DNA of 64,000 nt, taken from positions 1 through 64,000 of IMG/VR virus record IMGVR_UViG_3300002143_000235; one strand, 5' to 3'. This document shows positions 9,830-63,332 of the stretch, piece after piece (the stretch's first letter is position 1; every line of letters starts with the position of its first letter). The position numbers and the translations under genes are program-made. The notes beneath the pieces were generated by a model. The model was given only the letters and a program-made list of their open reading frames with translations, was not told where the DNA came from and made no database searches.

Positions 9830-10915
9830 ATGTTTACTAATATACATCATTGGCTTCTTATTGAATCTTTTACACCATCAAAATTACGCAGTCCTGAATC
9901 AGTAGTTGCTCCAGAAAATCTAAAGGATATTGATTGGAAAGATTTACAGATTGTTGAACTTGGTGATGATGGAAATAATATGATCAATCTTGGTATTCAA
10001 TTACCAGGTGAAGACAAACCAAATGATGGTATTGTTCTTGATATTCAAATGATACATGATGAGTTATACCAACCACATATGTTCTTCTCAGCTGAAATGC
10101 AAGGTGGTGGACTCGGTTTCAAAGTCCTTCTTAAATTTATTCATGAGTTTGGACACTTCTATTCTGGTGACGGGCGCCAACAAAATAAGACACAGATTCC
10201 TGTAATTTTTGATAAGTTAAAAGCACAAGGTGATATTGATGCATATCGGTTACCACATGGTCATTTATTTATATTAAAAAGCAATCCTGACCGTAACTAT
10301 TTGGTCAATAAATACGTAAATAAAGAGAAAAAGATGATTACAACAATAGATGAGTTCTGCTCTGTAAATGAATCTAGTTCTGAACCAAGAATGATGTCTT
10401 TTATCATTCCTGAAAAGAAAAACTGGATCGAGCAGGGTGAAAATGTAGGTATACGTTTCATGGGAAAAACATATTGGATTAAAGAATCAGATCGTAAATT
10501 TTTTGAAGACAATATTGGTAACTCTATTGGATTTAAATATTTTCCTAGTGCAATGTATGTTGAGATGCCAACAGTATTGAAACAAAACATTGTAGCAAAG
10601 ACTGAATCATTTATATCTGAGTCTGATCTACGTAACTATTCAACATTAAATAAAGTCCATCATCTTTTAAAAAATGATAAAGTCACTGTTTATTATTTTG
10701 GACCACATGATACTCCTGATACAGCATTAAAATTTGATGCAAAAATTGTTACACCGCCATACATCTCACGTAACAATGTAGAAGCTGTAGTTAGATCCAT
10801 AGATCCAACAGGTGAAAAATACTTAGGTGACGGAGTTGTATGGTATAAACGTGGACGTTGGGTACATGTTGGAAAATGGAATACCCGAAAAGTAAATAAG
10901 AGAATACTACGATGA
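9830..10915 (+). CDS. putative head-internal polyprotein; GNAT-like first module, internal second leader MITTIDEF
   Basis: MFTNIHHWLLIES leader; QGGGLG motif; internal KKMITTIDEFCSVNESS and TESFISES. Confidence 0.6.
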   Translation: MFTNIHHWLLIESFTPSKLRSPESVVAPENLKDIDWKDLQIVELGDDGNNMINLGIQLPGEDKPNDGIVLDIQMIHDELYQPHMFFSAEMQGGGLGFKVLLKFIHEFGHFYSGDGRQQNKTQIPVIFDKLKAQGDIDAYRLPHGHLFILKSNPDRNYLVNKYVNKEKKMITTIDEFCSVNESSSEPRMMSFIIPEKKNWIEQGENVGIRFMGKTYWIKESDRKFFEDNIGNSIGFKYFPSAMYVEMPTVLKQNIVAKTESFISESDLRNYSTLNKVHHLLKNDKVTVYYFGPHDTPDTALKFDAKIVTPPYISRNNVEAVVRSIDPTGEKYLGDGVVWYKRGRWVHVGKWNTRKVNKRILR

Positions 10916-11310
10916 TTACAACAATAAAACAATTCAAACGTATAAATGAAAATCACGATGGTGTTGCTGCAAGCATAATTAGTAGATTTAGTAACATTTC
11001 AACCATTGATGAGGTTCGTGCATTCTTCAAAGCATTAATAGATGAACTCAGTTTATCATTTCACCCAGATGATTCATTTGACGGATATGGAAATCATGTT
11101 AATGGTCAATGGGTTGATTTATTTACACCAGAAGAAGCTACACAACTTGATGCAATTATGCAACAGTGTTGGAAAGTTTGTTACGATAATAATACTGATA
11201 TTTATACAATAGGTATGATACTTATGGGATATGAACCTGAAACTGGTACAGACACAACAATCGACCCTGCTGATATACATATTTACAAAAGTGTATTGGA
11301 CATTCAATAA
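10912..11310 (+). CDS. putative head-internal protein (MITT leader)
   Basis: MITTIKQFKRINEN; ATGA overlap. Confidence 0.7.
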   Translation: MITTIKQFKRINENHDGVAASIISRFSNISTIDEVRAFFKALIDELSLSFHPDDSFDGYGNHVNGQWVDLFTPEEATQLDAIMQQCWKVCYDNNTDIYTIGMILMGYEPETGTDTTIDPADIHIYKSVLDIQ

Positions 11311-11349
11311 TACTCAAACCATATATAAAAAAAAGATATTTTAAACATA

Positions 11350-11745
11350 ATGTTCACATCAATAAATGAATGGAAGTCTCTAAATGAGATGAATCAACAA
11401 GAGATCAAATTATCATTTAATCTCAATACACCATACAAATGGGGACCTGGATGGACAGGAACACCAGAACAACATGAAGAGATGGATGGAATAGCTGCCG
11501 GTATAATTGGTATGTTACAATTACAAGATAAACATAATGAATGGAACGTTCCTGAAGCAACTGGAACTGGTATTGTGCAATATGCATATCTTCACCCAAT
11601 GGAATATGTATTCAGACTCAGTGAAAACGATCGTGTAACAATAGATAGAATTATCGATGTAGTAAAAAAGACTATAAGTATGACAGACTTTGTTAATATT
11701 GAAAGTATCAAACTGAAAACGCCAGAAGGTTATACAACATTATAA
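11350..11745 (+). CDS. putative head-internal protein (leader family)
   Basis: MFTSINEWKSLNEM; ATATATAA upstream. Confidence 0.7.
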   Translation: MFTSINEWKSLNEMNQQEIKLSFNLNTPYKWGPGWTGTPEQHEEMDGIAAGIIGMLQLQDKHNEWNVPEATGTGIVQYAYLHPMEYVFRLSENDRVTIDRIIDVVKKTISMTDFVNIESIKLKTPEGYTTL

Positions 11746-11773
11746 AGAAAGGACAACAATTGTTGTCCTTTTC
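11746..11773. terminator. intrinsic terminator
   Basis: aaggacaa-caattg-ttgtccttt. Confidence 0.8.
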
Positions 11774-11809
11774 TATTAAACAACTTGTGTTTAAATATGT
11801 ATAATCACC

Positions 11810-12916
11810 ATGACAAAATCAAACACATTAGACACAAAATACCTTGATCTGGTACAGGATATCATTTCAAATGGTTATGACAGCGGTGATCGTACTGGAA
11901 CCGGTACACGCAAACTTTTTGGTAAGATGATCAGACATAATATGTCTGAAGGCTTCCCACTCCTCACATCAAAGAAGATGTTCTTTAAAGGTGTATTCCA
12001 TGAACTTATTTGGTTTCTAAAAGGAGACACAAACATCAAATACCTTGTAGACAATAATGTTTACATCTGGGTAGGAGACTGCTACAAAAAATACGCAACA
12101 CTCTGTTCAGCTAACTCAGATGAATTCAATGAATGGATGCGTGATAATGGAGATGGAACACTTTCTATGTTTACCCGTGATGAATTCATTGAAAAGATCA
12201 AGACTGATGATATCTTTGCTGCAAAGTGGGGTGAATTGAATAAGGTTTATGGCGCAGAATGGGTAAACTGGCGCGACCAAGTGAATCAAATTCAGGAACT
12301 TATTGATACACTTAAAAACAATCCTGATTCAAGACGTATGCTAGTTACAGCATGGGATCCGATCAATGTTGCAAAGGCAGTTCTTCCACCATGTCACTAT
12401 GCTTTCCAGGTATTTACACGTGAACTTACCTTAGAAGAACGAAAGAACATTTTCTTTGATACAAAAAATAATTATTACCATCCTCATTATGATAATGATA
12501 CACGTAGTAATTTGAACAGTTATGCGATTGCTGACGGTGATTTATTTTTTGAAGATCTCATGAACGAACCGTCTATCAATGTTCCAAAGCGTTCAATATC
12601 ATTGATTTACAATATGCGTAGCGTTGATATTGGGTTAGGAATTTGTTTTGATGAAGCACTATATGGCTTATTATTACAAATGATTGCACAATGTGTAAAT
12701 ATGATACCAGAAGAACTTGTGTGCTCACTTGGGGATACACATCTTTATAATAATCATATCGAGCCTATCAAAGCCCAATTTAAAGCTGAACACTTTGATC
12801 TTCCTATTGTATCACTAAATCCTGACGTTACGGACATCTTCCAATTCAAGTTTGAAGACATCACTGTTTATAACTATCAATCAAGTCCAGTAATAAAATT
12901 AGAGCTTTCTAATTAA
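11810..12916 (+). CDS. thyA: thymidylate synthase family enzyme with N177D substitution
   Basis: DRTGTGT, FHELIWFLKG, SRRMLVTAWDP, LPPCH, MRSVD, GDTHLYNNH; GICFDEA instead of GLPFNIA. Confidence 0.85.
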   Translation: MTKSNTLDTKYLDLVQDIISNGYDSGDRTGTGTRKLFGKMIRHNMSEGFPLLTSKKMFFKGVFHELIWFLKGDTNIKYLVDNNVYIWVGDCYKKYATLCSANSDEFNEWMRDNGDGTLSMFTRDEFIEKIKTDDIFAAKWGELNKVYGAEWVNWRDQVNQIQELIDTLKNNPDSRRMLVTAWDPINVAKAVLPPCHYAFQVFTRELTLEERKNIFFDTKNNYYHPHYDNDTRSNLNSYAIADGDLFFEDLMNEPSINVPKRSISLIYNMRSVDIGLGICFDEALYGLLLQMIAQCVNMIPEELVCSLGDTHLYNNHIEPIKAQFKAEHFDLPIVSLNPDVTDIFQFKFEDITVYNYQSSPVIKLELSN

Positions 12917-12945
12917 ATTATCAAATAAATTAGTATATTTGTGGT

Positions 12946-13386
12946 ATGTGTGATACAAAACATACCATATATCTTAAAATGTGCATGGAGCTTGCAGAGG
13001 CATCAAAATGTCGCAAGCTCCATGTTGCATCACTTATTGTGCATAAACACAAGATCATTGCAACTGGTGTAAATGGAACTCTTCCAGGACACGAAAACTG
13101 TTGCGATAAATTTGCTCATCTTACAGATGATGAATTTGTAAATGCACATAATGGCTGGTCGAGTAGAAATGAAATTCATGCCGAGATGTCTGCACTTCTT
13201 ACTGCTGCAAAATCATCTACTGAGATCAAAGAAGACAGTATCATGTACTGTACACATGAACCATGTGACAATTGTGCTAAACATATTGCTTATACAGGAA
13301 TCAAAGAAGTATACTTTATTCATAAATATCATAACAATCTATCTGATAATATTTTTGGTTTGACTCTAAAACAACTTTCAATTTGA
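12946..13386 (+). CDS. dCMP deaminase
   Basis: IIATGVNG, HAEMSAL, HEPCDNCAK zinc-deaminase motifs. Confidence 0.92.
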   Translation: MCDTKHTIYLKMCMELAEASKCRKLHVASLIVHKHKIIATGVNGTLPGHENCCDKFAHLTDDEFVNAHNGWSSRNEIHAEMSALLTAAKSSTEIKEDSIMYCTHEPCDNCAKHIAYTGIKEVYFIHKYHNNLSDNIFGLTLKQLSI

Positions 13387-13412: not shown

Positions 13413-13610
13413 ATGTTAACTAATATAAACGAATTTAAATCGGAAGCCCATAAATTTTGGTGGAATAGATTAGGACAATCTACAAAAATTGATATTTGTC
13501 GACGTTCTAGTTCTAAAGTTAGTGGGCTTAGTGGTTGTGGTTTATCAGATTTTAATCCTGATAAACTTTCAGATCATACAATTAAAGCTCTTTATAATTT
13601 GAATCATTAA
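13413..13610 (+). CDS. small leader-family protein
   Basis: MLTNINEFKSEA; GATATATAA upstream. Confidence 0.6.
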   Translation: MLTNINEFKSEAHKFWWNRLGQSTKIDICRRSSSKVSGLSGCGLSDFNPDKLSDHTIKALYNLNH

Positions 13611-13649: not shown

Positions 13650-14243
13650 ATGATCACTTCTATTGATAAATTTCGTCAACTTAATGAGAATCAGCAAGCT
13701 GATTTACAGCAGCTTGCATCAGAAATAAAACGTACTTATCCACAGTGTCGATTTAGTATTCGAACATCATACAATACTATTCGTATTGCAATTATTTCTG
13801 CACCTATAGAATTACGTCTTGATTCATCAAGAACAAACGAACCAGTAAATCATTATTACATCAAATCAAATTATGCTGATATGCCTCAAGCACAAGAGTT
13901 GCTTCAAGGTATTGCAGATATTGCTCTTCGTAATAATCGTGAAGTTTCACATGATGGTGATTATGGAAGTATACCCAATTACTATGTAACAATGACTGTT
14001 GGTGAATGGGATAAACCTTTCACTGTGGCTGGATCAACTGTTACACAATTACCTGTTGAATCAACAAATGAAGCAGCAATGAAAGAACATTATGTTCTTT
14101 TTAAAGGTGATGATGTATTAGGTGGTTTTAATACTAAAGAAGAAGCATTAATTGCTTTTGCACAACAACCTAAAACGGTTAATAGATGGAGAGAGCAAGC
14201 ACAGCTTTACAAATTAATCAAAGAAAATAAAATTGTTCGCTGA
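13650..14243 (+). CDS. putative head-internal two-module protein
   Basis: MITSIDKFRQLNEN; internal ESTNEA. Confidence 0.7.
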   Translation: MITSIDKFRQLNENQQADLQQLASEIKRTYPQCRFSIRTSYNTIRIAIISAPIELRLDSSRTNEPVNHYYIKSNYADMPQAQELLQGIADIALRNNREVSHDGDYGSIPNYYVTMTVGEWDKPFTVAGSTVTQLPVESTNEAAMKEHYVLFKGDDVLGGFNTKEEALIAFAQQPKTVNRWREQAQLYKLIKENKIVR

Positions 14244-15430
14244 TGAGAATCATATACACACAACAAGCCATTCCAAATCAGATAAATAAATCTATATTCT
14301 TAGCTGGTCCATCACTTCGTCCTGGACAGGATGGAATATCATGGCGTATAAATGCTTTAGAAATTCTTCGTGTACTTGAATACGATGGTGTTGTGTTTGT
14401 ACCTGAATCTGAAGATGGAAGTTTTGATGATAATTTCAACTGGAAAACACAAGTCATGTGGGAGTCGAAATGTCTACGTATGTCTGACAATATTTTATTT
14501 CACATTAATCGTAATATTGAATCTGGATTATTAGGTCTTACAACAAATGATGAATGGGGATTTTGGAAGGACTCAGGTAAATGTGTACTTTCTATTGAAT
14601 CTGGAGCAGACAAAACAGATTATCAAGAGTGGTGGGCTAAAGAACTTAAAGTTCCGACATTCAATGATTTATTTAGTGCACTTCGTCATATTATAAAGAT
14701 ACAACAAGATGCACCACGTGTTGATGGTGAACGAATGATACCACAAGAAATTTGGTTGCTTGATCAGTTTCAATCTTGGTATAAACAATTAAAAGCAAAT
14801 GGAAACTGGATCAGTGATGCTCGAGTTTTAAATACCTATCGCATTCCTTCAAACAATAAAATATTTGCATTTTCTCTTTGGGTAAACGTTTTTATTCGTA
14901 ATGAAAATCGTTACAAAAATAATGAATTTATATTCTCAAGACCTGATATCAGTTCATGTGTGATGTATTATCCAAATAATAATTTGATGGATACAGAGAT
15001 TGTTCTTGTATCTGAATTCAGATCACCAGTTAATAATACAAAAGGCCTTGTTTATGAAATACCGGGTGGTTCCAGTGTGAAACCTGGTGAAGATCCAATG
15101 GCTGTTGTTATTGAAGAACTCAAAGAAGAAACAGGAATCGGCGGGATGAATCTTGCACGACTTGAATACATTAGTGCACGTCAACTAGCAGCAACAATTC
15201 TTACACATAAATGTCATTTGTATGGTTATACTATGTCTGATGCAGAGTATATAAATGTTAAGAACAATGTAGGTAAGATTTTTGGAAACGAAGCTGACAC
15301 AGAAAGAACAGAACTACATATTTTTACACTGCAAGAGATTATAGATAATGATTATATTGATTGGTCGAATCTTGGTATGGTAATGAATGTATTAAACACA
15401 ACAACTATAAAAAACAGTCCTAATGTATAA
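14243..15430 (+). CDS. nucleoside 2-deoxyribosyltransferase-like plus Nudix hydrolase fusion
   Basis: SIFLAGPS..WR N-terminal domain; YEIPGGS..EELKEETGI Nudix box. Confidence 0.75.
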   Translation: MRIIYTQQAIPNQINKSIFLAGPSLRPGQDGISWRINALEILRVLEYDGVVFVPESEDGSFDDNFNWKTQVMWESKCLRMSDNILFHINRNIESGLLGLTTNDEWGFWKDSGKCVLSIESGADKTDYQEWWAKELKVPTFNDLFSALRHIIKIQQDAPRVDGERMIPQEIWLLDQFQSWYKQLKANGNWISDARVLNTYRIPSNNKIFAFSLWVNVFIRNENRYKNNEFIFSRPDISSCVMYYPNNNLMDTEIVLVSEFRSPVNNTKGLVYEIPGGSSVKPGEDPMAVVIEELKEETGIGGMNLARLEYISARQLAATILTHKCHLYGYTMSDAEYINVKNNVGKIFGNEADTERTELHIFTLQEIIDNDYIDWSNLGMVMNVLNTTTIKNSPNV

Positions 15431-15840
15431 TGTATACAACAATCAATGAATTTCGTACAAATGAAAGATATGACAATCATAATAGAGTAATACCGCGTGA
15501 TTTCTTCAATGAATCTAAATTATTGAAGTGTATGGGACAGCTAGCTTTAAAAATTCTTGATGGTAGAGTTCCTGAAGGAATAACTATTGAGATAGAAGAA
15601 TCTGGTGAAGCTTTCAATATTGCTTTATCTAATGAATATGATTGCTTATATGTTACAAACTATCCAATAACAGTTAATGGTGAAAATGTTTTTTTTGGTA
15701 CAACATATAATTCAAAAGCTTTGTACCCTATGGTATGTTATGATGATGATGTAGAATTTAATGTATTTGATGATCAAGGTAATTTTACAAATAAATTTAT
15801 TGAACAATTTGTAAATCAAACAGAAAATGTTCAGGCATGA
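15430..15840 (+). CDS. putative head-internal protein (leader family)
   Basis: MYTTINEFRTNE. Confidence 0.7.
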   Translation: MYTTINEFRTNERYDNHNRVIPRDFFNESKLLKCMGQLALKILDGRVPEGITIEIEESGEAFNIALSNEYDCLYVTNYPITVNGENVFFGTTYNSKALYPMVCYDDDVEFNVFDDQGNFTNKFIEQFVNQTENVQA

Positions 15841-16829
15841 TAACAACAATCAATGAATTTCGTGCAATTAATGAGATTGGTGAAGGTACGAAATCATATA
15901 ATTATACAATAGAACCATCACCTTTTGGTGGATATTCTGGATTTTTTATTACTGAACGTAATGAAGAATATGAAATTTATATGACACATACGTACACACA
16001 AGATGGTGAAAAAACAAATATTTCATTTGATTTAAAAGGATATGATCATGAAGCAGATAAAGAAACTAATACACATGATCAATATCGTATTATGACAACA
16101 ATTATATTAGTTGTAAAAGATGTATTAAAAAGAGAACCAGGTATTAATATTATTGAATTTGAGGCTAAAGAGAAAAAAATAGGGTCAACAAATCAACGAT
16201 TAATGTTATATCTAGCTTATGCTAAAAAACATCTTGGCCCAGAATGGCAAATATTAAAAGGTGTAAACTCCGCAACAATTATAAAAGGAAAACCAGGTTT
16301 AGAATATACAAAGAGTATTGATTCATTAAATGATGAATCAACTAATGAAAGTCTATCATTTCCAGCAGCACATGGCATCAACCAGGAAGTTGCTGTTGTT
16401 GATATTGATGGTAATCTCCAATACAGTGGAAGGGTGTCAAAGGTATCATTCACTGCACAGAAAGTTTTCTATGATGTAGTAAGTGATTATGACGGTACTA
16501 TTGAATGTGATATTGATTCAGTATTTGTAGAACGTTCTATTGGTATTATTTCTGAAACTGAAATGGAAGAGATGTTTGGTAAAGAAAAAACTGAAGAAAT
16601 TCTTACACGTAAAAATGAATCTAGGGCATCAAATTTACAATCTACAAATCTTACATATAAGAGTGTTGAACGTAATGACATTTTATGGCTTACGGTTATG
16701 CTAAAACCACGTAACTCAGCACCTGGTAACAGAATGGGTGAAATGGGTGTTGTTAAAGTTCGTGTACTTGATACTTTTTATGGTATGGATAAACTTAAAC
16801 ATTTGAAAGCAACAGATAAGATAATGTAA
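15837..16829 (+). CDS. putative head-internal polyprotein (three modules)
   Basis: MITTINEFRAINEI; internal STNES and RKNES. Confidence 0.7.
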   Translation: MITTINEFRAINEIGEGTKSYNYTIEPSPFGGYSGFFITERNEEYEIYMTHTYTQDGEKTNISFDLKGYDHEADKETNTHDQYRIMTTIILVVKDVLKREPGINIIEFEAKEKKIGSTNQRLMLYLAYAKKHLGPEWQILKGVNSATIIKGKPGLEYTKSIDSLNDESTNESLSFPAAHGINQEVAVVDIDGNLQYSGRVSKVSFTAQKVFYDVVSDYDGTIECDIDSVFVERSIGIISETEMEEMFGKEKTEEILTRKNESRASNLQSTNLTYKSVERNDILWLTVMLKPRNSAPGNRMGEMGVVKVRVLDTFYGMDKLKHLKATDKIM

Positions 16830-17708: not shown

Positions 17709-18476
17709 TTGATTATGTTAAACAATTGGATATTTTTTTATAAAATGTATATGAATAATACACATAACTTAATTGGTGTCGATCCATCTATTATATCTAC
17801 TGGTGTAGTGATAAATGGCAAAGCATTCAACTACTGCAGAGAATCAGATGCAAAGAATACAAAACTAACAAAGCTCAGCAAGTGGTTTGATTTATGTAAA
17901 GATGTCATTACTTATCGCTATATAAATCTTGATTATGTTGAAGGATACTCAGCTAATGAAATTCAAAAAATGAAATTGTATGATGCAATCACTACAATGA
18001 TTCTTGAAGACATTAAAAAAGAGATTGATTCAACACTCCCAACCAAGATTGCAATAGAGGGATACTCATATTCATCCGCTGCAGGTGATATAATCGACTT
18101 AGTGACGTTTTCTACGCTTCTAAGAAGGAAACTACTTACAATCACGTCAGACATCACCATACTCGCCCCAATGAGCTTAAAACTGGAAACATGCAAGCTT
18201 ACTTACATACCTACTGAAAAAAAAATAGGCGGAAAGAATCCAAGAATTGAATATACATATCGATCAAAGCTTGGAATTGCTGGTGGATCTTTCACTAAAC
18301 CAGACATGTACTTAGCACTCATTGAAAATGATAATCTAAATGATAAGTATTGTTCATTTCTTAAGGAACACAAGATGAGTATCATGTTTTTAAAAACAAT
18401 CAAGAAACCTCTTGAAGATGTCAATGATGCCTATTTGCTTTACTTATTGCTTTTAAACAATCGTGTTGGTGTTTAA
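17709..18476 (+). CDS. RuvC-like Holliday junction resolvase (likely start 17748 or 17754)
   Basis: LIGVDPSIISTG, IAIEGYSY, DVNDAY RNase H-fold acidic motifs. Confidence 0.75.
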   Translation: MIMLNNWIFFYKMYMNNTHNLIGVDPSIISTGVVINGKAFNYCRESDAKNTKLTKLSKWFDLCKDVITYRYINLDYVEGYSANEIQKMKLYDAITTMILEDIKKEIDSTLPTKIAIEGYSYSSAAGDIIDLVTFSTLLRRKLLTITSDITILAPMSLKLETCKLTYIPTEKKIGGKNPRIEYTYRSKLGIAGGSFTKPDMYLALIENDNLNDKYCSFLKEHKMSIMFLKTIKKPLEDVNDAYLLYLLLLNNRVGV

Positions 18477-18550
18477 TTTTATTATTTTTCATATATAAAA
18501 GAAAAATTCACGAACATGTTTATATCAATAAATGAATACCGTAAATCAAA
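18467..18550 (+). repeat. promoter plus leader cassette, copy 1 (copy 2 at 18937-19020)
   Basis: tggtgtttaattttattatttttcatatataaaa...aacatgtttRtatcaataaatgaataccgtaaatcaa duplicated. Confidence 0.92.
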
Positions 18551-18887
18551 TGACAAAAAAACTAGTTTATCATCAGAAAAATATAATATACAAGAATCAG
18601 CTTTTCATGATGAATCTGAATATGCAATAACATTAGCCAATGAAAATGGATTTCAATTTTCTATAGATCAAAAAAATAATGCACAATATGTTTATACATT
18701 ACCTGTTAATATAGGTAATATTTCTACAGTAACATATAAACTGTTACGTATTCCTGGTTCATTTCAACAATGGCGTATTAATTGTGAAGTTGTATTTAAT
18801 GATACAATAAAACAGCCTGGAAAATTAAAAAAATCTTTGTTTTGTATCTCATCTTTATGTGATTTTACAGTTAATATTTCACAATAA
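18516..18887 (+). CDS. leader-family protein, paralog of last module of 18987-19955
   Basis: MFISINEYRKS; LANENGFQF..YVYT..TYKL vs IANSLGFAF..YVWT..EYRL. Confidence 0.6.
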   Translation: MFISINEYRKSNDKKTSLSSEKYNIQESAFHDESEYAITLANENGFQFSIDQKNNAQYVYTLPVNIGNISTVTYKLLRIPGSFQQWRINCEVVFNDTIKQPGKLKKSLFCISSLCDFTVNISQ

Positions 18888-18936
18888 TGTTCACAAAGAT
18901 CTTAGACTGAAAAATATTTGAAGCGAAGACAAATAG

Positions 18937-19020
18937 TGGTGTTTAATTTTATTATTTTTCATATATAAAAAAAAAACCAACACAACATGTTTGTATCAAT
19001 AAATGAATACCGTAAATCAA
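18937..19020 (+). repeat. promoter plus leader cassette, copy 2
   Basis: see 18467-18550. Confidence 0.92.
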
Positions 19021-19955
19021 TCAATGAAACTATTACAAATTCACAAGATTTACTTACAGCATACCAATCATATGGTTTTGAATTAGATCGTAATACAGGT
19101 GGTATTGTTAAAGATTTATCAAATGATTTTTACATTATTATAAGATACGCTGATCCAATGGAAGAAATAAATGATACAACATTAGTTGTATGTAATGATG
19201 ATATTGAAAAATATATTGTTCTTACTGGTGATGATAATATCAAGACATTCCTAGATAATGGATTTAATGATTTTGAAAATGCTATTATTAACGATCCTAA
19301 TAAAGCCGATCAAATTGCACAACAATTTGGATTTGTTAATGAAATAATGGTTAATGAAACAAATCAAACATTAAATGGACACATAGGTGAATTTGATTGG
19401 AATGAAATTAATAATATTACAGCAAAATTACATGTTATTGGATTAAATGATGTTAAATTTTATTATGGAAATACAGATAATTTTCATTATTTGTATCCAG
19501 AATGGAATTTCATCATAAATAATGAAAAATATAAACTTGTAACACAAGATAAAGATTTAATAAATGGTGAATTTGTTATTCGTAAATATATAAATGGATT
19601 TTCGAAAGGATATGTTGTCAATGGATCATTAAATGATTGTATAACATATCTAACATCTATTATAAATGAACTTCATAATGAAGCTGTAAATCCAGTAGAT
19701 TATATGGGCCGTGACCAAGCTATTGAAATAGCAAATTCTTTAGGATTCGCTTTTGATATTTCATCAAAATACCATAGTCATTATGTATGGACTGAAAACA
19801 TTAACAGTTCTGTTATTAGTTCTATTGAATATCGATTATATAAAGTTAGTGGTATTCGATGGAAAATTTCAAGTCGTATAACTTATGCATTAATTAATTC
19901 TGAAAATGTTAGTGAAGTTAACACTATTAGTGATGTTTGTTGGTTTGATATTTAA
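18987..19955 (+). CDS. putative head-internal polyprotein
   Basis: MFVSINEYRKSINET; internal FVNEIMVNE and IINELHNEA. Confidence 0.7.
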   Translation: MFVSINEYRKSINETITNSQDLLTAYQSYGFELDRNTGGIVKDLSNDFYIIIRYADPMEEINDTTLVVCNDDIEKYIVLTGDDNIKTFLDNGFNDFENAIINDPNKADQIAQQFGFVNEIMVNETNQTLNGHIGEFDWNEINNITAKLHVIGLNDVKFYYGNTDNFHYLYPEWNFIINNEKYKLVTQDKDLINGEFVIRKYINGFSKGYVVNGSLNDCITYLTSIINELHNEAVNPVDYMGRDQAIEIANSLGFAFDISSKYHSHYVWTENINSSVISSIEYRLYKVSGIRWKISSRITYALINSENVSEVNTISDVCWFDI

Positions 19956-53238: not shown

Positions 53239-53311
53239 TACACCCTGCAGGATTCGAACCTGCGACATCTTCCATGTAAAAGAAGCGCTCTACCAACTGA
53301 GCTAAGGATGC
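53239..53311 (-). tRNA. tRNA-Val(UAC)
   Basis: GCATCCT/AGGGTGT, CTTCT-TTTACAT-GGAAG, GCAGG-TTCGAAT-CCTGC. Confidence 0.92.
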
Positions 53312-53321
53312 ATATCTTTTG

Positions 53322-53392
53322 TACTCTTTGAAGGAATCGAACCTTCTCCCTTAGCATGTCGAGCTAGTATTCTACCGTTAAACCAAAAGAGC
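53322..53392 (-). tRNA. tRNA-Val(GAC), atypical C33
   Basis: GCTCTTT/AAAGAGT, TAGC-TCGACAT-GCTA, GAAGG-TTCGATT-CCTTC. Confidence 0.75.
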
Positions 53393-53642: not shown

Positions 53643-54200
53643 TCATGATACGACCCATGCATTTCCATATGTCTTGCATATAGCTCGGCATCGTTCTAAA
53701 AATTCATTAAACTCCTCATCAGAATTAAATTCTTCAGAATTATCAAAAGCATCAGAAAAATGTCGTGACAATACGTTATTGGCCCAATCGTAATCTTTAC
53801 CTTCAGCAATGTGCATATCTATATCAATTACACCATCATATTGAAGTGCCACCACTTTAGCCAACAATAGACTTAATTCATAGGCATCTGTTACTAATCC
53901 TGTCTGTGCTGATTTTGCAGGTGACATAACTTTAAAAGATTCATTCATCCATTTTTCTTTTGGATTTTTGATATCAAGTTTATCAAGTTCTTTTTCAGTT
54001 ACAACTTTGTAATTTTTATCACCATCGAAATCTTTTAATGCATCTTTTGCATCATTTTTAAATTCCCATCCTGATTCAACTTTCTTTTTAGAAATATTAA
54101 CTACAAAGAATTTATAAGCTTCAACGTCTTTCTTGTATTGTTTATCAGCCTTCTTTCCTTCATTTATGAATTGCTTAAACTGATTAAATTCTGTTATCAT
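53643..54200 (-). CDS. putative head-internal two-module protein (true start 54200)
   Basis: MITEFNQFKQFINEG; internal WMNES; TATATAA at 54223. Confidence 0.7.
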   Translation of the reverse strand: MITEFNQFKQFINEGKKADKQYKKDVEAYKFFVVNISKKKVESGWEFKNDAKDALKDFDGDKNYKVVTEKELDKLDIKNPKEKWMNESFKVMSPAKSAQTGLVTDAYELSLLLAKVVALQYDGVIDIDMHIAEGKDYDWANNVLSRHFSDAFDNSEEFNSDEEFNEFLERCRAICKTYGNAWVVS

Positions 54201-54237: not shown

Positions 54238-55242
54238 TCAGAAATAAGTACGTGGTTCGATGATGATTCCAAGCTTTGGAATAGATTTTGTCTTCTCCTT
54301 GCTGTAGAAATTGAATTTAACAATCGGTCCCATGAAATGAAATTCTGCACCGTCTTCAAGATTAAATGCATCAATCAATTGTTTGTACTCTTCATTCGCG
54401 ATCTTTGGTGAAATAATAAATCTATCACCTGGTTTAAGTTCCATTGGTTTTAATGTATTTTCAAACTCAAGACTGAATTTTCTTGAACTTCCTTTTTCAT
54501 CAATAACAAGACGACGAATTTTCTTTTTCTTTGGACCTTCAGGATAGTTAACCAAAATCTCCATACCATCATAAATCACAAATTCTTTATTCGGTACAAG
54601 TTTCTTTAATTCCATTGGAATAGCTGTTGGTGAATATATAGCAGCTTTTGGTTGATTTTTGTTTTCTTCAGCATTTAATTCTTTTTCTGCTGGTGTTAAC
54701 ATTGTGTCTGGATTATTCTTAAGATTAACAGCAGGGTAAAGTTTTGCAAACTCAATATCAGTAATATCTAAATCAATAATTGTATTCTTACGTTTACGAT
54801 CATCAAATGATAAAACATTCATATCAATATCACGAAGCTGCTTGAGTTCCTTTGCATCATGCGCAAGTATTTTATTATAAATATCTCGGTTACTAAATGA
54901 AAAAGGATAAAGTAATAATGTTACCACTGTCTGATTCACAACAAGTGCAACATAAACATTACCAACACTCTTATCAATTTGAATTTCTGCTTGAATTAAT
55001 CTACCACCTTGACGAAAATAAAGATTTCCAAATGTTATAGCTATCGGTGAAATGGCTGTTGCTGTCTTATCTAATATATTCAATCCATAATGATACATTG
55101 CCTTACGGAAACGGTACTCAGCTTTTTGTGGATCATCCAACTTATTTAAAATTACTGCGTTACGTATTCTAAGACTAAAACGGTTATCACTATCATATGC
55201 ATAATGCTTAGAGAAGAAGAATTCGTTAATGGATGTAATCAT
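54238..55242 (-). CDS. leader-family protein (likely start 55242)
   Basis: MITSINEFFFS. Confidence 0.65.
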   Translation of the reverse strand: MITSINEFFFSKHYAYDSDNRFSLRIRNAVILNKLDDPQKAEYRFRKAMYHYGLNILDKTATAISPIAITFGNLYFRQGGRLIQAEIQIDKSVGNVYVALVVNQTVVTLLLYPFSFSNRDIYNKILAHDAKELKQLRDIDMNVLSFDDRKRKNTIIDLDITDIEFAKLYPAVNLKNNPDTMLTPAEKELNAEENKNQPKAAIYSPTAIPMELKKLVPNKEFVIYDGMEILVNYPEGPKKKKIRRLVIDEKGSSRKFSLEFENTLKPMELKPGDRFIISPKIANEEYKQLIDAFNLEDGAEFHFMGPIVKFNFYSKEKTKSIPKLGIIIEPRTYF

Positions 55243-56930: not shown

Positions 56931-59900
56931 ATGGCAAAGGAAAAAAGCATTGAAGATGTTTACAAAAAACTCTCACAGGAAGAACACGTATTAGTAAGAC
57001 CTGATACCTATGTAGGTTCAGTAATACCACAAGAAAAAATGATGTGGTGCTACGAAAACGATGCAATTATAAAAAGAAACGTGCGGTATATTCCAGCATT
57101 TTTAAAATTATTTGATGAGATTCTTACAAATGCTTCTGACCATGTACAACGTGGTGGAAAAGTAAAAAATATTAAGGTAAACATTACAGATGATTGGAAA
57201 ATCACCGTATGGAATGATGGAACGGGTATTCCTGTTGTTTTACATAAAGAACACAATGTCTATATTCCTGAATTAATTTTTGGTCACTTATTAACTGGAT
57301 CTAATTATGATGATGATGATGAGCGTTTTGGTGCGGGTCGTAATGGTCTTGGATCTAAACTTGTATCAATATTCTCAAAAGAATTTGTTATTGATTGTGC
57401 AGACGGAAAGAAACATTACTTTCAAACATTTAGTAACAACCTTGCTATCAAATCTGTGCCTGAAATAAAAGCAAGTAAACAATCATATACATCTATTTCA
57501 TATCTAACTGATTTTGATCGTTTACCAATCAAGGGATTGGAACGTGACACACTTGCACTTTGTATGAAACGTATGCTTGATATTGCTGTATACAATCCTA
57601 CAGTTAATGTGTATTTCAATGATGAATTGATTAAAATTAATAATCTTGCAGACTGGTGTCAGATGCACATCGATAATGATGACGAATTGTTTTTAGAGAC
57701 TGTAAATGATAGATGGTCAATTGGTCTTGCTCAATCTAAATCAGATGTGTTTGATCACTGTTCTATTGTTAATGGTAACACGACATGGCAAGGGGGAACA
57801 CATGTTGATGCTATTATGAATCAAGTTGTAAAGAAACTTGTTGAAGACCTTACAAAAGGAAATAAAGGTATCAAGATTAAACCAGTTGATGTAAAAAATA
57901 AGTTTCATTTATTTTTGGTTTGTAAAGTAGCAAACCCAACTTTTGATACACAAACAAAAGAAAACTTAACTATCAAGATTCAGGATAAATTTGAACTTTC
58001 TGAGAAGTTGTACAAACAACTCATGAAGTCAGAAATTATTAAATCTATTATTGAGTGGGTTCAATTACGTGAACAGGCTGAATTAAACAAACTGAATAAA
58101 AAATCTGCTGGTAAGACAGTACGTATTGAAAAACTTGTTGATGCACACAAAGCAGGAACAAATGAAGGTCACAAATGTTCAATTATTTTAGCTGAAGGTG
58201 ACTCAGCTCTTCAATCTGTACTTTCAGGTTTATCTGTTGTTGGTCGTGATTATTTTGGTGTCTTTCCACTCAAGGGTAAAGTATTGAATGTTCGTGATGT
58301 TAAAATAAGTCGTATAACAGACAACGAAGAAATTAGAAAGATCTTACAATTTATTGGACTTGTTCCAGGTAAAAAATATGAATCACTAAGTGAACTTCGT
58401 TATGGACGTGTTATATTCATGACGGATGCCGATGTCGATGGAACTTCAATTAAAGGACTACTTATCAACTTCATTCATAATTTTTGGCCGGAGCTTCTTG
58501 AGCTTGGATTCTGTTTTGAGTTCATTACACCGATCGTGGTTGCACGAAAAGCAAAACTAGTAAAAGAATACTACAACTTATCAAACTATCACACAGACAA
58601 AGAAAATGGTAAACTGAACGGCTACACGATTAAATATTATAAAGGTCTTGGAACAATTAAAGGTGAAGAGATTAAAATCATGTTCAAGGATTTGAACAAA
58701 CACCTTATTCCGTTTGAATACAATGCAATTCGTGACAATGATAAAATTGACATGGTATTTAGAAAAGATCGTGCAAACGATCGTCGTGAATGGTTGCTTG
58801 GTTACAAAGGTGAGATCATTCCAGACAAGTTTGGAAAATCAAATCGCATTGATGAATTTATCGATACAGAATTCATTCAGTTCTCGAATGCTGATAACAT
58901 TCGTTCTATTCCAGGAATGATTGATGGATTTAAACCATCACAACGTAAGATCATGTTTGCAGCTTTTAAGAAGCTTGGACATACAGAGCGAGATGAAATC
59001 AAGGTAGCACAATTTGGTGCTTACACAGCTGAGGTGAGTAGTTACCATCACGGTGAGGTATCATTGATGCAAGCAATTGTTGGAATGGCACAGGATTTTG
59101 TAGGAGCAAACAATCTTTCACTATTAATGCCATCTGGTCAATTTGGAACAAGAACAAATCCAAGTGCAAGTGCAAGTCCTCGTTATATTTTTACATACTT
59201 GAATCCGTTAACACGTTACATATTCAGAAAAGAAGATGATTCAATCTTGAATTACCTCAATGAAGATGGTCAGAATATTGAACCAGAATTTTATCTTCCT
59301 ATTATTCCAATGCTTTTGGTTAATGGTGCAGCAGGGATTGGTACAGGGTGGTCAACAGACATTCCAAAATACGATCCAATGGATCTCATCGAAATTGTAA
59401 AACGTAAACTTGTTAAGGAAAACTTAAAATATCAAGTTAGTCCATCATATAAAGGTTGGAAAGGTGAATTAGATTGGAATGAAGAAAAAAATAGTTATAC
59501 ATCAAAAGGAATATTTAAAACATCTAAGAAAGGTGTAATTGTTACAGAATTACCGATTGATATATCAACTGACAAATTCATCGCAACACTTGACAAATTA
59601 GTTGATGAAAAAAAGATTAAATCATATATTGATAACTCTACAGATACAACAGTTAATGTCGAGGTTGTTTTAAATGGTGTGAGCAAAGATGTTGCAGGGT
59701 TGCTAAAATTAAGTAACAGTATCTCAATGAATAACATGAACACTTTCTTGGATAACAAGATTGTGAAGTGGACAACAACTGAAGACATGATTAACACATG
59801 GATTGATATCAGACTTAGTTGGTACGAAAAGCGTAAGATTCAATGGATGAGTGTTTTGGAACAACAGTTTGATCGTTACGATAATTTGCTTGGATTTATC

Positions 59901-60179
59901 AAGGGTGTAATTGATGGTGAAATTTTAATCAATAATCGAAAGAAAGACGTGATTATAAAAGATCTTGAAACAATGGACTTTATGAAAATTAATGATAGTT
60001 ATGATTACCTCTTGAACATCCCAGTTTATCACTTTACGACTGAAAAGTTTGATGAATACAAAAAGATGGCAAAAAATATGCGATTAGAACTTAAAGAATA
60101 CAAATTGATGAATCCTGCTGATATATGGCAGAAAGATTTAAAGGAACTTGAAGAACAACTGATTAAGGCTGGTTATTAA
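56931..60179 (+). CDS. type IIA DNA topoisomerase, single-chain (B+A fused)
   Basis: RPDTYVGS, GRNGLG, AEGDSA, PLKGK, MTDADVDG, YYKGLGT, DGFKPSQRK, YHHGE, catalytic SPRYIFT. Confidence 0.96.
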   Translation: MAKEKSIEDVYKKLSQEEHVLVRPDTYVGSVIPQEKMMWCYENDAIIKRNVRYIPAFLKLFDEILTNASDHVQRGGKVKNIKVNITDDWKITVWNDGTGIPVVLHKEHNVYIPELIFGHLLTGSNYDDDDERFGAGRNGLGSKLVSIFSKEFVIDCADGKKHYFQTFSNNLAIKSVPEIKASKQSYTSISYLTDFDRLPIKGLERDTLALCMKRMLDIAVYNPTVNVYFNDELIKINNLADWCQMHIDNDDELFLETVNDRWSIGLAQSKSDVFDHCSIVNGNTTWQGGTHVDAIMNQVVKKLVEDLTKGNKGIKIKPVDVKNKFHLFLVCKVANPTFDTQTKENLTIKIQDKFELSEKLYKQLMKSEIIKSIIEWVQLREQAELNKLNKKSAGKTVRIEKLVDAHKAGTNEGHKCSIILAEGDSALQSVLSGLSVVGRDYFGVFPLKGKVLNVRDVKISRITDNEEIRKILQFIGLVPGKKYESLSELRYGRVIFMTDADVDGTSIKGLLINFIHNFWPELLELGFCFEFITPIVVARKAKLVKEYYNLSNYHTDKENGKLNGYTIKYYKGLGTIKGEEIKIMFKDLNKHLIPFEYNAIRDNDKIDMVFRKDRANDRREWLLGYKGEIIPDKFGKSNRIDEFIDTEFIQFSNADNIRSIPGMIDGFKPSQRKIMFAAFKKLGHTERDEIKVAQFGAYTAEVSSYHHGEVSLMQAIVGMAQDFVGANNLSLLMPSGQFGTRTNPSASASPRYIFTYLNPLTRYIFRKEDDSILNYLNEDGQNIEPEFYLPIIPMLLVNGAAGIGTGWSTDIPKYDPMDLIEIVKRKLVKENLKYQVSPSYKGWKGELDWNEEKNSYTSKGIFKTSKKGVIVTELPIDISTDKFIATLDKLVDEKKIKSYIDNSTDTTVNVEVVLNGVSKDVAGLLKLSNSISMNNMNTFLDNKIVKWTTTEDMINTWIDIRLSWYEKRKIQWMSVLEQQFDRYDNLLGFIKGVIDGEILINNRKKDVIIKDLETMDFMKINDSYDYLLNIPVYHFTTEKFDEYKKMAKNMRLELKEYKLMNPADIWQKDLKELEEQLIKAGY

Positions 60180-60203: not shown

Positions 60204-60713
60204 ATGATAACAACGATTAATGAATGGCGCATATTTAATGAATCACAAGAACGTGTGACGATCTTGATGCGTGGTATTCCAGGATCTGGAAAATCTACAC
60301 GTGCCAAACAATTAGTAGGTAATGGTGTTATTCATTCTACAGATGATCTGATAGAAGCACAGGGCGATTATAATGATTTTTTTGCTAAAATGATTGAAGC
60401 AAAAGATTTTACACCACTCATCGAGTTACATGGGAAAAATCTAGCCAATGCAATTGAATCTATGAAATCTGAAATATCACCAGTCATCATAGATAACACA
60501 AATCTCAAAATGGTGGATGTTAAGCCGTATGTCGTAGCTGCACAAGAATTAGGATATGTTATTGTGATAGAAGATATTGGAACAGGTGGATTAACAGCTG
60601 AAGAATTAGCTGCTCGAAATACACATGCTGTACCATTGAATGTTATCGAGAATATGATCAAAACACATCAAGCTGAAAGTCCTTTTACAGTTGAAAGAAT
60701 TCTAAACGCTTGA
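60204..60713 (+). CDS. AAA_33/N4BP2-like polynucleotide-kinase-fold protein with leader
   Basis: MITTINEWRIFNES; MRGIPGSGKST, IIDNTN, RNTHAVP. Confidence 0.8.
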   Translation: MITTINEWRIFNESQERVTILMRGIPGSGKSTRAKQLVGNGVIHSTDDLIEAQGDYNDFFAKMIEAKDFTPLIELHGKNLANAIESMKSEISPVIIDNTNLKMVDVKPYVVAAQELGYVIVIEDIGTGGLTAEELAARNTHAVPLNVIENMIKTHQAESPFTVERILNA

Positions 60714-61337: not shown

Positions 61338-61372
61338 ATTGTTTTACATTACAAATATAACAACATTTTTTG

Positions 61373-61900
61373 TTATATAATATTTCCAATAAGCATTTTT
61401 TCTATTTCTTTTCCAGCTATAAGACGTGTATAATGAAATCCATCCGGATTTAAATTCAATAATTCTTTGTTAAGTATCTCACCAACAAGTGTATTAGGTA
61501 CAGGTAATCCACCCATTTTTAACATTTTATTTTCAAGAGCACCACTAACTTCAGCCCATGCATTACGATCAATCATACGCAAATCTTCTTCAAGAATATG
61601 AAATAACCATTGTTTTCCCAACATGGAACCATCGCTTCCACCTCCAACTAGTTTACGTCCTCGAAGATTTTTATATACTGCAACAGCAACAACTTTACCG
61701 CCCTTTTTAACAAGTTTCCAAAGCCATGACTCTGCTATTAATGATTCTACATCAGGTGCTGATAAAAATCCACCAATAGGAGCATAACTCATCTGTAGAA
61801 TATCCCAAACTTCATTAGCATATTTACGCATGTCGTCTTGAAATAAGTTCACAAATCCTTCGTGTATATGATCCCTGTAATCATTATATAATGTTATCAT
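61373..61900 (-). CDS. leader-family protein
   Basis: MITLYNDYRDHIHEG; TATATAA upstream. Confidence 0.65.
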   Translation of the reverse strand: MITLYNDYRDHIHEGFVNLFQDDMRKYANEVWDILQMSYAPIGGFLSAPDVESLIAESWLWKLVKKGGKVVAVAVYKNLRGRKLVGGGSDGSMLGKQWLFHILEEDLRMIDRNAWAEVSGALENKMLKMGGLPVPNTLVGEILNKELLNLNPDGFHYTRLIAGKEIEKMLIGNII

Positions 61901-61968
61901 ACATTATATAGATAAAATTGACAATCTATTTTCAATGTTTTGATATATAAAAAAAATGTTTCAAATAG

Positions 61969-63051
61969 ATGATAACAATATTTAATGAATTCAAACAATC
62001 ATTGGTGAAACCAACATCTCAAATTAATGAGAGTTCTGAAAATACATATGCAAAAGGTTTAAGTGATATAAATGAACCGCGTCCATCAAGGATGAAAGCA
62101 CCAAGTAGTGAATATCCACATGAATTCCCACTTTTTAATAGTAGAAATCCGCGTGGTGGATTATATATTCAAGATCAAATGAATGACATGTTTATTGATA
62201 AATATGGTGAAGAACGTGGAAATGCAATGTTCCAGGGTATTTTAAATGCACCTAAACATGGGGCATTTTTTCAATTAGGAGATAAGATTGCACGTGAAAA
62301 ATCAACAATGATTAATGATCTTGGAATTGCATATGGTCCAGGTACAGATTTTAATGGTGATTATTTTATGTATTCATATTTTTCGCTTTGGAAGGCTTGG
62401 ATGGATAAGAATGGCTACAAATATGTCATTCCAACTCCGGAGGAAACAGAAGCAAAGAAAGCAATGAAAATTGCAGCTGAAGAACTTGCTAAAGAACAAG
62501 AACGTCAAGCAGAAGTAACAAGACGTAATGAGGGCAATAAAAAAATATTTGATAGTAAAATGCAAGCATTAAGACAACGTTTTGGAAAACTACTTGACAT
62601 TAAACCTGATGCAAAAGATTTAGATCGCCTTAAAAATATAACTACAAAAAGTCCTTGGTCAATGGAAACTTTTGTTCAGAAGATGTCTAACTCTATTAAA
62701 GATGCTACAAAAGCAGCAAGACGTGGAACAGCTATTATTTCATTAATTGGAACAAATGTATCAAAATATAATGCACTTGATCTTGCTGAAATATTTTTTA
62801 AAAGAGCATTACAATTAGGAGCTGTAACAGAAGGATTAGTATATGAAGCTATCATGCAATCAACCGATGAATATGATGTAAAAACTATCAATCTTAATAC
62901 ACATACCTACATGTATGGTAATTCTAAAATACAAAGAAAAATTGATTCTTATGTCAAAGCCAACAACTTAACACGTTTTGATAATGAATGGCAATATGGT
63001 GCACATCTTGATGGAACATTTAATGTTAATTTCAAAGTTTTAAAACAATGA
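61969..63051 (+). CDS. putative head-internal polyprotein
   Basis: MITIFNEFKQ..QINES; internal LVYEA. Confidence 0.7.
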   Translation: MITIFNEFKQSLVKPTSQINESSENTYAKGLSDINEPRPSRMKAPSSEYPHEFPLFNSRNPRGGLYIQDQMNDMFIDKYGEERGNAMFQGILNAPKHGAFFQLGDKIAREKSTMINDLGIAYGPGTDFNGDYFMYSYFSLWKAWMDKNGYKYVIPTPEETEAKKAMKIAAEELAKEQERQAEVTRRNEGNKKIFDSKMQALRQRFGKLLDIKPDAKDLDRLKNITTKSPWSMETFVQKMSNSIKDATKAARRGTAIISLIGTNVSKYNALDLAEIFFKRALQLGAVTEGLVYEAIMQSTDEYDVKTINLNTHTYMYGNSKIQRKIDSYVKANNLTRFDNEWQYGAHLDGTFNVNFKVLKQ

Positions 63052-63332
63052 TAACCTCAATCAACGAATGGCAAAAGATAAATGAGGAATTTCCACCGAG
63101 TAATTTTGATGATGTTGAATCAATATCTGACACAAAGTGTAGTGAATTTACCCCAGAAGAATTGGATCAAGCCTTAGGTTTCTTGGTTAATTATGGAATG
63201 GATTATATTGAGAATGAAGGAAGTGTTTATGAATTTATTCAAAATAGAGATGAAGATAATCTAAATGATGAAAGTGTCAAAAAGATGCTTGACTTATTAA
63301 TACGAATTAGAGCCAAATATGAAGGATCTTAA
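63048..63332 (+). CDS. putative head-internal protein (leader family)
   Basis: MITSINEWQKINEE. Confidence 0.7.
   Translation: MITSINEWQKINEEFPPSNFDDVESISDTKCSEFTPEELDQALGFLVNYGMDYIENEGSVYEFIQNRDEDNLNDESVKKMLDLLIRIRAKYEGS

Follow-up and report, generated by a model that had tools for sequence, protein, structure and literature searches.

The capsid-targeting sequence (CTS) of phage T4, known from the work of Mullaney and Black (reviewed in PMC9026906 and PMC3012670), is the closest described counterpart of the element that we have analysed here, that is, a short N-terminal leader peptide on many unrelated proteins encoded in the first 64 kb (64,000 nt, hereafter the window) of the IMG/VR virus record IMGVR_UViG_3300002143_000235. 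For packaging, the first 10 residues of the T4 internal protein IPIII are enough; within the CTS, residues 4 and 7 act in targeting and residues 8 and 10 in processing, and the protease gp21 cuts after L/I-x-E (PMC9026906). The internal proteins of T-even phages have been described as diverse defence proteins that have the CTS alone in common (PMC3012670). As read from the T4 genome (NC_000866), ipII and ipIII start with MKTYQEFIAE/A and ipI with MKTFKEF...ITE/A, the slash marking the cut site here and below.

The leader of the window is laid out in much the same way. Both peptides have a core of T-φ-x-E-aromatic (φ, hydrophobic residue), which reads T-Y-Q-E-F or T-F-K-E-F in T4 and T-I-N-E-F/W here, followed by φ-x-E, and I5 and the aromatic residue 8 of our leader correspond to T4 residues 4 and 7. 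In both phages the short N-terminal peptide is common to otherwise unrelated, non-essential proteins and is accompanied by a T4-type head module, and the tagged genes are scattered among early-region genes, with some here lying next to a tRNA cluster as T4 ipI does. On the other hand, our leader has a length of 13–14 residues instead of 10, as it has one more residue in front of the core and two more from the aromatic residue to the cut site. It is found on 28 genes of this genome, and its counterpart in another dialect on ~91–118 genes of a 642-kb relative, compared with three in T4. The cargo behind it consists mostly of acidic enzymes of 65–361 aa, whereas T4 IPII and IPIII are small basic proteins. 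In addition, the protease is here apparently fused to a long coiled-coil scaffold, and the system is known from sequence alone.

Giant phages of the phiKZ type (phiKZ, 201phi2-1, SPN3US) offer a second comparison, with many head proteins that are cut after Glu by a gp21-related protease (PMC5694885). Their propeptides are thought to target the prohead, are mostly longer than 100 aa and end in the cut motif S/A-x-E (PMC5694885; PMC9026906), and two SPN3US paralogues have identical 15-residue N-termini (PMC5694885). The likeness would be that of giant phages packing many head proteins processed in the gp21 manner; here, however, one tag of 13–14 aa stands on unrelated proteins with I/L/V/F at P3, which is not a propeptide of the phiKZ type. 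A third comparison is with the polyvalent proteins of phages and conjugative elements, which Iyer et al. 2017 are said to have described and from which the Pfam names ART-PolyVal and LPD29 reportedly come. Both domains are found in our cargo (1.8e-13 and 1.4e-6, respectively), and the proposed role, delivery together with the DNA against host defences, is alike in both systems. Polyvalent proteins are nevertheless single giant multi-domain chains, unlike the separate small tagged proteins here, which do not belong to that class. Encapsulins are an analogy only. Their short terminal peptides also send unrelated enzymes into a shell of the HK97 fold, but these cargo-loading peptides are as a rule found at the C-terminus and attach to the shell protein itself; no protease takes them off, and injection of the cargo does not occur. 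A literature search found neither the leader strings nor any mention of capsid targeting linked to huge phages, most subscription journals lying outside its coverage.

Overall, we consider it likely that the leader is a capsid-targeting propeptide of the T4 type, carried by a large and variable set of proteins that would be packed in the head and delivered with the DNA. The CTS principle itself is already known from T-even phages; what is new is the scale, the Mahaphage-related lineage, the longer leader with its lineage dialects, and an enzyme cargo that overlaps with the polyvalent domains.

The leader peptide and its variable cargo

The whole record, from an uncultured jumbo phage (G000 below), has 313,708 bp and 32% GC, is classed as linear and is ~80% complete according to CheckV. 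The preliminary description of the window had claimed that more than 20 unrelated proteins have a common leader, and that the first 24 nt are nearly identical in several of them. Both claims hold. At ≤3 mismatches, the window contains 7 copies of the 24-nt string ATGATAACAACAATTAATGAATGG, whereas 100 dinucleotide-preserving shuffles contain none. A 13-position matrix was then built from the leaders and used to score all 3,043 Met-started open reading frames (ORFs) of ≥40 aa in the six frames of the whole genome, a full-genome scan that had been suggested as a check. It yields 28 clean leader ORFs at 15.8–36.7 bits, while the next best ORF reaches 7.0 and the 99th percentile is 4.7. In 26 of the 28 the leader stands at the first Met of the ORF, and 23 are inside the window; leader starts found outside it are at 81824, 148353, 165095, 267952, 280317 and 312832. 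Among the 22 main positions named before, 21 are strong, but the one at 9830 is weak (0.1), though the same ORF has a strong internal leader at 10334 that had been overlooked. Two 'looser' versions, at 1683 and 35574, had been named as well. Their matrix scores are −26.3 and −19.5, and we have rejected them as leaders of the G000 type (type A); the common element is a generic φ-x-E near residues 10–12, which is present in 17% of ordinary N-termini.

The consensus of the leader is M-I-T-[TS]-I-N-E-[FWY]-[KR]-x-φ-x-E-[SN]. Along the peptide, the information content is high at positions 1–9, dips at 10–11, goes up again at 12–14 and is at background from 15 onward. In 101 unique leaders from G000 and its relatives, T is found at position 3 in 98, I at position 5 in 91 and E at position 7 in 81, and position 8 is F, Y or W in all. 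A φ-x-E ending at residues 10–15 is present in 72% of them, compared with 17% of control N-termini, and the residue after it is mostly N or S. The cut motif had been given as xNE; this is not strict, as relatives have ILE, LYE, IVE and LNE at the same place, but the more general φ-x-E holds. Some ORFs of G000 are in a twilight range with scores of 5–7, i.e., MITDFLEFKKYQLIRE (108272–109192, minus strand), MITDFNQFINENS (166782–167243, minus strand) and MYTKISDFKKSQLNES (253655–254248, plus strand), the first of which sits on an endolysin/peptidase-like protein (phrog_7, 2.2e-35). These may be further tagged proteins, among them a possible cell-wall hydrolase.

Behind the leader, the sequences are unrelated, as had been stated. 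The mature parts of the 28 proteins fall into 26 blastp clusters, and the only links are between 18516 and 18987 and from the self-overlap of 9830 and 10334. Different Pfam families are represented, namely LPD29 (gene 13650), Sa_NUDIX (32755), an AAA_33 kinase (60204) and ART-PolyVal (165095); when Pfam is applied to 115 leader proteins from three genomes, ~10 are named, SET, HNH and GNAT being further families, and the cargo of relatives adds ParB-like nuclease, SprT-like and HNH domains. This bears on the explanation that all leader proteins form one fast-evolving paralogous family, of which the N-terminus is the last recognisable part. Duplicates do exist. The genes 18516 and 18987 (window 18476–19020) share a nearly identical stretch consisting of 40 nt upstream, including TATATAA, and the first 11 codons, and their mature parts match at 4.7e-9 in blastp; this is a tandem duplication of promoter and leader in which the cargo has diverged. 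Also, one of the 73 blastp clusters formed by the mature parts in the relative LR756502 contains 11 leader proteins. Against a single family, however, stand the different families and folds of the mature parts (NUDIX, ADP-ribosyltransferase, P-loop kinase, LPD29, SET, HNH, GNAT) and the cluster counts, which in the related complete genome G002 (391,061 bp, with terminal repeats) are 21 different clusters for the 21 leader genes found by the matrix. A leaderless homologue of the kinase exists too. We regard common descent of the whole set as extremely improbable.

Actually, the leader is a separable add-on outside the cargo fold, because the Pfam domains of the cargo begin at residues 18–21, the kinase homologue of G002 (308440–308865) has no leader and its alignment to gene 60204 begins at residue 15, and the AlphaFold2 model for gene 19959 places a low-confidence helix outside the domain (residues 1–19 with low pLDDT, helix at 5–16, domain from residue 21 with pLDDT >90). 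The domain, confidently modelled over residues 21–190, has weak Foldseek matches to isochorismatase/nicotinamidase-like hydrolases (best E 0.01), and an isochorismatase-like function may be taken as a lead only. For the C-terminal third of the same protein, homologues carry PF02195 (ParB-like nuclease). Elsewhere this ParB-like domain is fused to HNH, ankyrin, SprT-like or ART-PolyVal domains, and those fusions follow other N-terminal dialects (MGRIKSYDDFLIEG, MNKIKSYNNFINEG, MKYIDLFEN). Homologues of this cargo, recognised by 'VIVDVQ', occur in many contigs, nearly all of them with a leader and φ-x-E; they start with MYTKILDWKIFE in G000, with MITTINEFRKILE in G002 and with MKYIKTYEN in LR756502. 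The leader tracks the phage lineage and not the cargo. For the protein at 32755–33351, a look-up in the ESM Atlas gave no confident lead. Overall, the cargo is a variable set of mostly uncharacterised small proteins with one or two domains each, which are most plausibly tools for host takeover and counter-defence.

It should also be considered that the leader may be mainly a nucleic-acid feature, i.e., an A-rich unstructured region of translation initiation in a host that does not use Shine-Dalgarno pairing, or a short homology block (ATGATAACAACAATTAATGAATGG, TGA/TAA overlap) for cassette recombination, with the peptide as a by-product. Such a feature would suit a 24-nt string that is nearly constant while the flanks differ between copies, and a cargo set that is very different between relatives (G002 homologues exist for only 5 of the 28 cargo proteins). 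It would also suit the eight leader genes that overlap the stop of the upstream gene by ATGA, and no Shine-Dalgarno-like sequence is visible upstream of the G000 genes. The codons are divided on this point. For Ile at leader positions 2 and 5, ATA is used in 14/21 and 13/24 cases, compared with 23% genome-wide, and there is therefore some nucleotide-level pressure as well. The codons for Asn, Glu, Thr and Phe, in contrast, are used in roughly genomic proportions, the amino acids are kept or replaced conservatively (W/F/Y, K/R, T/S), and the leader peptide is retained in a relative of 23% GC. Moreover, other lineages hold the physico-chemical pattern in other letters (MKHLKxYKIFES), the genes of the capsid protein, large terminase and tail sheath are without the leader, and the closing φ-x-E would be left unexplained. 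Judging from these substitutions, selection acts on the leader peptide, and the ATA bias points to some nucleotide-level pressure or gene conversion on top of it. A nucleic-acid feature as the primary cause is quite improbable in our view, and cassette exchange may be a side benefit. We also note that ATGATAA at leader starts gives the overlapping upstream gene TGA and TAA stops, which may relate to the ATA bias.

Head module, putative maturation sites and proposed route

The head module of G000 contains a gp23-like capsid protein (PF07068, 51 bits) and a gp20-like portal protein matching phrog_213. The protease is found in the first 200 residues, of the gp21 family, of a 789-aa ORF (genome 94971–97340, minus strand), which match phrog_207, head maturation protease (1.6e-25), and also T4 gp21 (BLASTP E 4e-5), with NRNKRxY, GE(L/F)xHP and VSSR in register. 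The tail of ~590 aa is coiled-coil and acidic, and contains a tandem repeat, EF[AS]EY[IV]ANE, and many φ-x-E sites. As a whole, this ORF has the appearance of a fusion between protease and scaffold, with an N-terminus, LIVE/R, that resembles LIE-9 of T4 gp21. In a phmmer search against PDB sequences, the capsid protein had no match, and the sole match of the protease ORF, a designed coiled coil, is due to its scaffold part.

The putative maturation sites of this module resemble the end of the leader. In the capsid protein, the propeptide motif WKPIVE parallels T4 WKPLLE, and the cut is predicted at GGVNE/NAMYANG in G000, at GMVKE/NVMYANG in G002 and at QINE/NAYVNA in LR756502. That is, the predicted cut is conserved in three lineages as φ-x-E/N, the same motif as at the end of the leader. 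An acidic head-module protein of 234 aa (G000 112150–112854), with a weak match to T4 gp22, starts with MYTTVNQFIAE/RKNARLNE/N, and the corresponding head-core proteins of G002 start with MKITHKEFLAE and MKITLKEFLKE. The neighbouring 161-aa protein starts with MLKTKEQILVE...INE/S, to be compared with MLKEQLIAE of T4 gp22. In its family, which comprises 172 representative clusters, [IVL]-x-E immediately precedes the conserved domain; among 106 members aligned on an anchor, 70% have φ and 75% have E there. Such head-core N-termini and the pre-domain φ-x-E are what one would expect of gp21-type maturation sites. The preliminary description had called the leader capsid-targeting-like, and this in silico comparison supports it, as the T4-like layout, the T4-type head module and the head-core N-termini agree.

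Concerning transcription, TATATAA occurs ten times more often than expected within 60 nt upstream of genes (60 observed vs ~6 expected), and at this distance it precedes 12/28 leader genes compared with 48/415 others (Fisher p 7e-5). For the capsid protein, large terminase and tail sheath, the motif stands 24–33 nt from the ATG, and it precedes the gene of a baseplate wedge protein too. The earlier statement that most leader genes sit behind this promoter is thus right for the 12 but not for the majority; most of the others overlap the upstream leader gene by ATGA, and therefore lie in operons.

Taken as a T4-type capsid-targeting propeptide, the leader would work as follows. The leader genes would be transcribed together with structural genes from TATATAA promoters, and the N-terminal amphipathic helix (I2, I5 and aromatic 8) would dock the protein on the prohead scaffold core during shell assembly. 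The gp21-like protease domain of the 94971–97340 ORF would then cut after the closing φ-x-E, usually at E13 followed by N/S, and possibly also after I-N-E7. The freed mature protein would stay in the head with the DNA and enter the host cell at infection. Considering that the same leader is present on 28 unrelated proteins, a large enzyme kit is probably packed in the head and injected with the DNA; the set would include a NUDIX enzyme, an ADP-ribosyltransferase, a kinase, a ParB-like nuclease fusion and a polyvalent-protein domain. Being injected with the DNA, this cargo would be present before any phage gene is expressed.

On the other hand, several points weigh against a capsid address, and some of them would suit a tag for another fate, such as binding by a phage chaperone, a degron for a phage or host protease, or other intracellular sorting, in which case the likeness to the T4 CTS would be superficial. 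The conservation of a peptide on unrelated proteins suits any peptide tag. With a median pI of 5.1, the leader proteins are for the most part acidic, and their cargo has ordinary cytoplasmic enzymes, e.g., the AAA_33 kinase with its untagged homologue in G002. The leader genes sit among replication and nucleotide-metabolism genes outside the head module, although the T4 ip genes do likewise. Besides, ~28% of the leaders (e.g., 34211, 55242 and 13413) are without φ-x-E at residues 10–15 and have only I-N-E at 5–7, so that they would need cutting at I-N-E7 or would remain uncut. The protease match to Pfam S77 (PF03420), 24.9 bits, is just under the curated cut-off of 27 bits. TATATAA also precedes the non-structural genes of NrdA and topoisomerase II, and because of this the leader genes can be called 'late' only tentatively. 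The ATA bias described above counts here as well, and so does the fact that this phage and all its leader-bearing relatives are uncultured. Nevertheless, a tag for another fate leaves unexplained why the same N-terminal motif is found on head-module core proteins, why the φ-x-E end matches the predicted maturation sites of capsid and core proteins, and why the leader matches the mapped targeting and processing residues of T4. Moreover, as read from the sequences, the leader shows neither hydrophobic nor twin-arginine features of an export signal. We consider such another fate unlikely, and retain the T4-type capsid-targeting propeptide as the probable identity of the leader.

Leader genes of the window

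In the following, each gene is given with the length of its product, its leader and the matrix score. The leader genes of the first third of the window are on the plus strand. The ORF at 9830–10915 (361 aa), with TATATAA 28 nt upstream of 9830, begins with a weak leader (MFTNIHHWLLIES, 0.1) and contains a strong one in frame at 10334 (MITTIDEFCSVNES, 27.5), and it looks like a fusion of two leader-tagged modules. The gene at 10912–11310 (132 aa; MITTIKQFKRINEN, 25.7) overlaps the upstream gene by ATGA and has no Pfam match, and that at 11350–11745 (131 aa; MFTSINEWKSLNEM, 31.2) has TATATAA at −28. Two genes with TATATAA at −26 come next, one at 13413–13610 (65 aa; MLTNINEFKSEAHK, 19.2), without a second φ-x-E, and one at 13650–14243 (197 aa; MITSIDKFRQLNEN, 26.6), with the LPD29 cargo (large polyvalent-protein-associated domain 29; PF18847, 1.4e-6) from residue 21. 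For the gene at 15430–15840 (136 aa; MYTTINEFRTNERY, 24.1), the leader is also present in a relative that shares the cargo motif YHRVIPRDFFNE. The product of the gene at 15837–16829 (330 aa; MITTINEFRAINEI, 32.1) is composed of halves that match two separate G002 leader genes in blastp, 86950–87411 and 86245–86640. If the protease cuts at internal φ-x-E sites, the fusion-like ORFs 9830 and 15837 would act as small polyproteins. The tandem pair mentioned above consists of 18516–18887 (123 aa; MFISINEYRKSNDK, 22.2) and 18987–19955 (322 aa; MFVSINEYRKSINE, 22.4; TATATAA at −25). It is followed by the gene with the 'VIVDVQ' cargo, 19959–20930 (323 aa; MYTKILDWKIFEAK, 15.8), and by 20927–21559 (210 aa; MITTIAQYRFLCES, 24.8), which overlaps this upstream leader gene by ATGA.

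A five-gene operon of leader genes occupies 31533–34729 on the minus strand. Its first gene is 34208–34729 (173 aa from the ATG at 34729; MITTINEWMQHNEN, 35.7), with TATATAA at −50, and the second, 33348–34211 (287 aa; MITTINEWRIHNKN, 32.7), is without a second φ-x-E. The leader closest to the consensus, with the exact 24-nt string, belongs to 32755–33351 (198 aa; MITTINEWKQFNES, 36.7). Next is 32132–32755 (207 aa; MITTINQWRKIYES, 31.9; TATATAA at −25), with a SMODS-associated NUDIX cargo from residue 18 (PF18167, 5.5e-28), and the last gene, 31533–32135 (200 aa; MITTINEWKKINES, 35.2), has 1 mismatch to the 24-nt string. When this operon was queried for public sequencing runs, none was listed.

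Further along the minus strand are 53643–54200 (185 aa from the ATG at 54200; MITEFNQFKQFINE, 23.0), with TATATAA within 40 nt upstream, and 54238–55242 (334 aa from the ATG at 55242; MITSINEFFFSKHY, 24.6), whose leader is kept in an orthologue on another viral contig. Both adjoin a tRNA cluster (51700–53392, minus strand), for which Rfam gives five genes and ARAGORN four, i.e., Gln, Gly and two Val. The P-loop kinase (AAA_33) gene is at 60204–60713 on the plus strand (169 aa; MITTINEWRIFNES, 35.5), with PF13671 (1.6e-11) from residue 20. Near the end of the window, 61373–61900 (minus strand, 175 aa; MITLYNDYRDHIHE, 18.8) is divergent from 61969–63051 (plus strand, 360 aa; MITIFNEFKQSLVK, 20.5), with TATATAA in the shared 68-bp intergenic region and at −25 of the latter, and 63048–63332 (plus strand, 94 aa; MITSINEWQKINEE, 32.3) overlaps this upstream leader gene by ATGA.

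The genes interleaved with the leader genes (window 4859–7141, 11810–13386, 14243–15430, 21649–22689 and 56931–60179) encode NrdA, thymidylate synthase, dCMP deaminase, a deoxyribosyltransferase-like/NUDIX fusion, a T4-type gp32 and a fused type II topoisomerase.

Relatives, dialects and meaning for huge phages

With GenBank relatives ranked by the portal protein, the uncultured huge phages LR756502 (642 kb, 40% identity), LR756504, LR745206 and LR756501 (735 kb) are the closest to G000, and the Lak phages (31%) and then the Tenacibaculum phages pT24 and PTm1 (25%) are further off. Huge phages of 634, 636, 642 and 735 kb have been placed, together with the Lak phages, in the Mahaphage clade, and Bacteroidetes hosts have been predicted for them (Al-Shayeb et al. 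2020, PMC7162821). When 20 kb of the window were compared with the GenBank phages by megablast, there was no match, and no cultured relative bearing the leader was found among the relatives compared. The absence of a Shine-Dalgarno-like sequence, as described above, would fit a Bacteroidetes host.

The leader pattern matches 50 IMG/VR stretches, some contigs having several of the matches. When whole records are scanned with a pattern that is slightly looser, G002 has ~13 matches, a fragment of 56 kb has 12 and one of 78 kb has 11, compared with 0 for the reversed-pattern control, and ORF reading of a 24-kb fragment of a relative gives 9 leader genes. The exact pattern is absent from LR756502, LR756501, LR756500, Lak-A1 and Tenacibaculum phage pT24, and the type-A leader is therefore not common to all relatives. 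By de novo word counting, we have found other dialects in LR756502 and pT24. In LR756502.1, 91 ORFs start with M-[KR]-[HY]-[LI]-[KR], compared with 0.84 expected from composition, and the number is ~118 by a matrix. These leaders typically read MKHLKxYKIFES or MKHLKRYNES, lie behind TAATATATA motifs and are densest at 10–95 kb. Like the T4 CTS, they have a hydrophobic residue 4 and an aromatic residue 7, and φ-x-E ends at residues 8–14 in 81% of them (YNE/S or IFE/S). In pT24 (LC168164.1), three proteins start with MK[GTS]ILEY[FV] (81877–82257, minus strand; 148875–149450 and 179862–180485, plus strand), which is close to MKTYQEF of T4. As a cultured jumbo phage of Bacteroidetes, pT24 is a possible system for CTS-like leaders. 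Overall, tagged genes number 3 in T4, 3 in pT24, 21–28 in G002 and G000, and ~91–118 in LR756502, with more of them in larger genomes.

Based on the above analyses, we tentatively propose, with a confidence slightly short of even, that in huge phages of the Mahaphage lineage ~5–10% of the genes (21–28 in G000 and G002, ~91–118 in LR756502) encode a capsid-addressed, protease-released and injected proteome, with a T4-like dialect of its own in each sub-lineage. If this is true, the set would far exceed any other known set of proteins that a phage injects together, and would help to explain what some of the additional coding capacity of huge phages serves. It would also represent a 'disassembled' alternative to polyvalent proteins, i.e., a second delivery format for ART-PolyVal, LPD29, ParB-like and SprT-like domains. 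The leader would be a sequence tag that marks early-acting effectors and counter-defence proteins in uncultured phages, internal leaders such as that at 10334 would be polyprotein cut sites, and phage capsids used to deliver proteins would gain new packaging tags with a matching protease.

Should the leader indeed direct proteins to the capsid, one could read from sequence alone which proteins uncultured jumbo and huge phages inject, dozens to ~100 per phage, and the tagged proteins, nearly all of unknown function, would be prime candidates for immediate host takeover or anti-defence. The three-protein CTS system of T4 would then be a small example of a principle that is widely conserved and can be expanded greatly.

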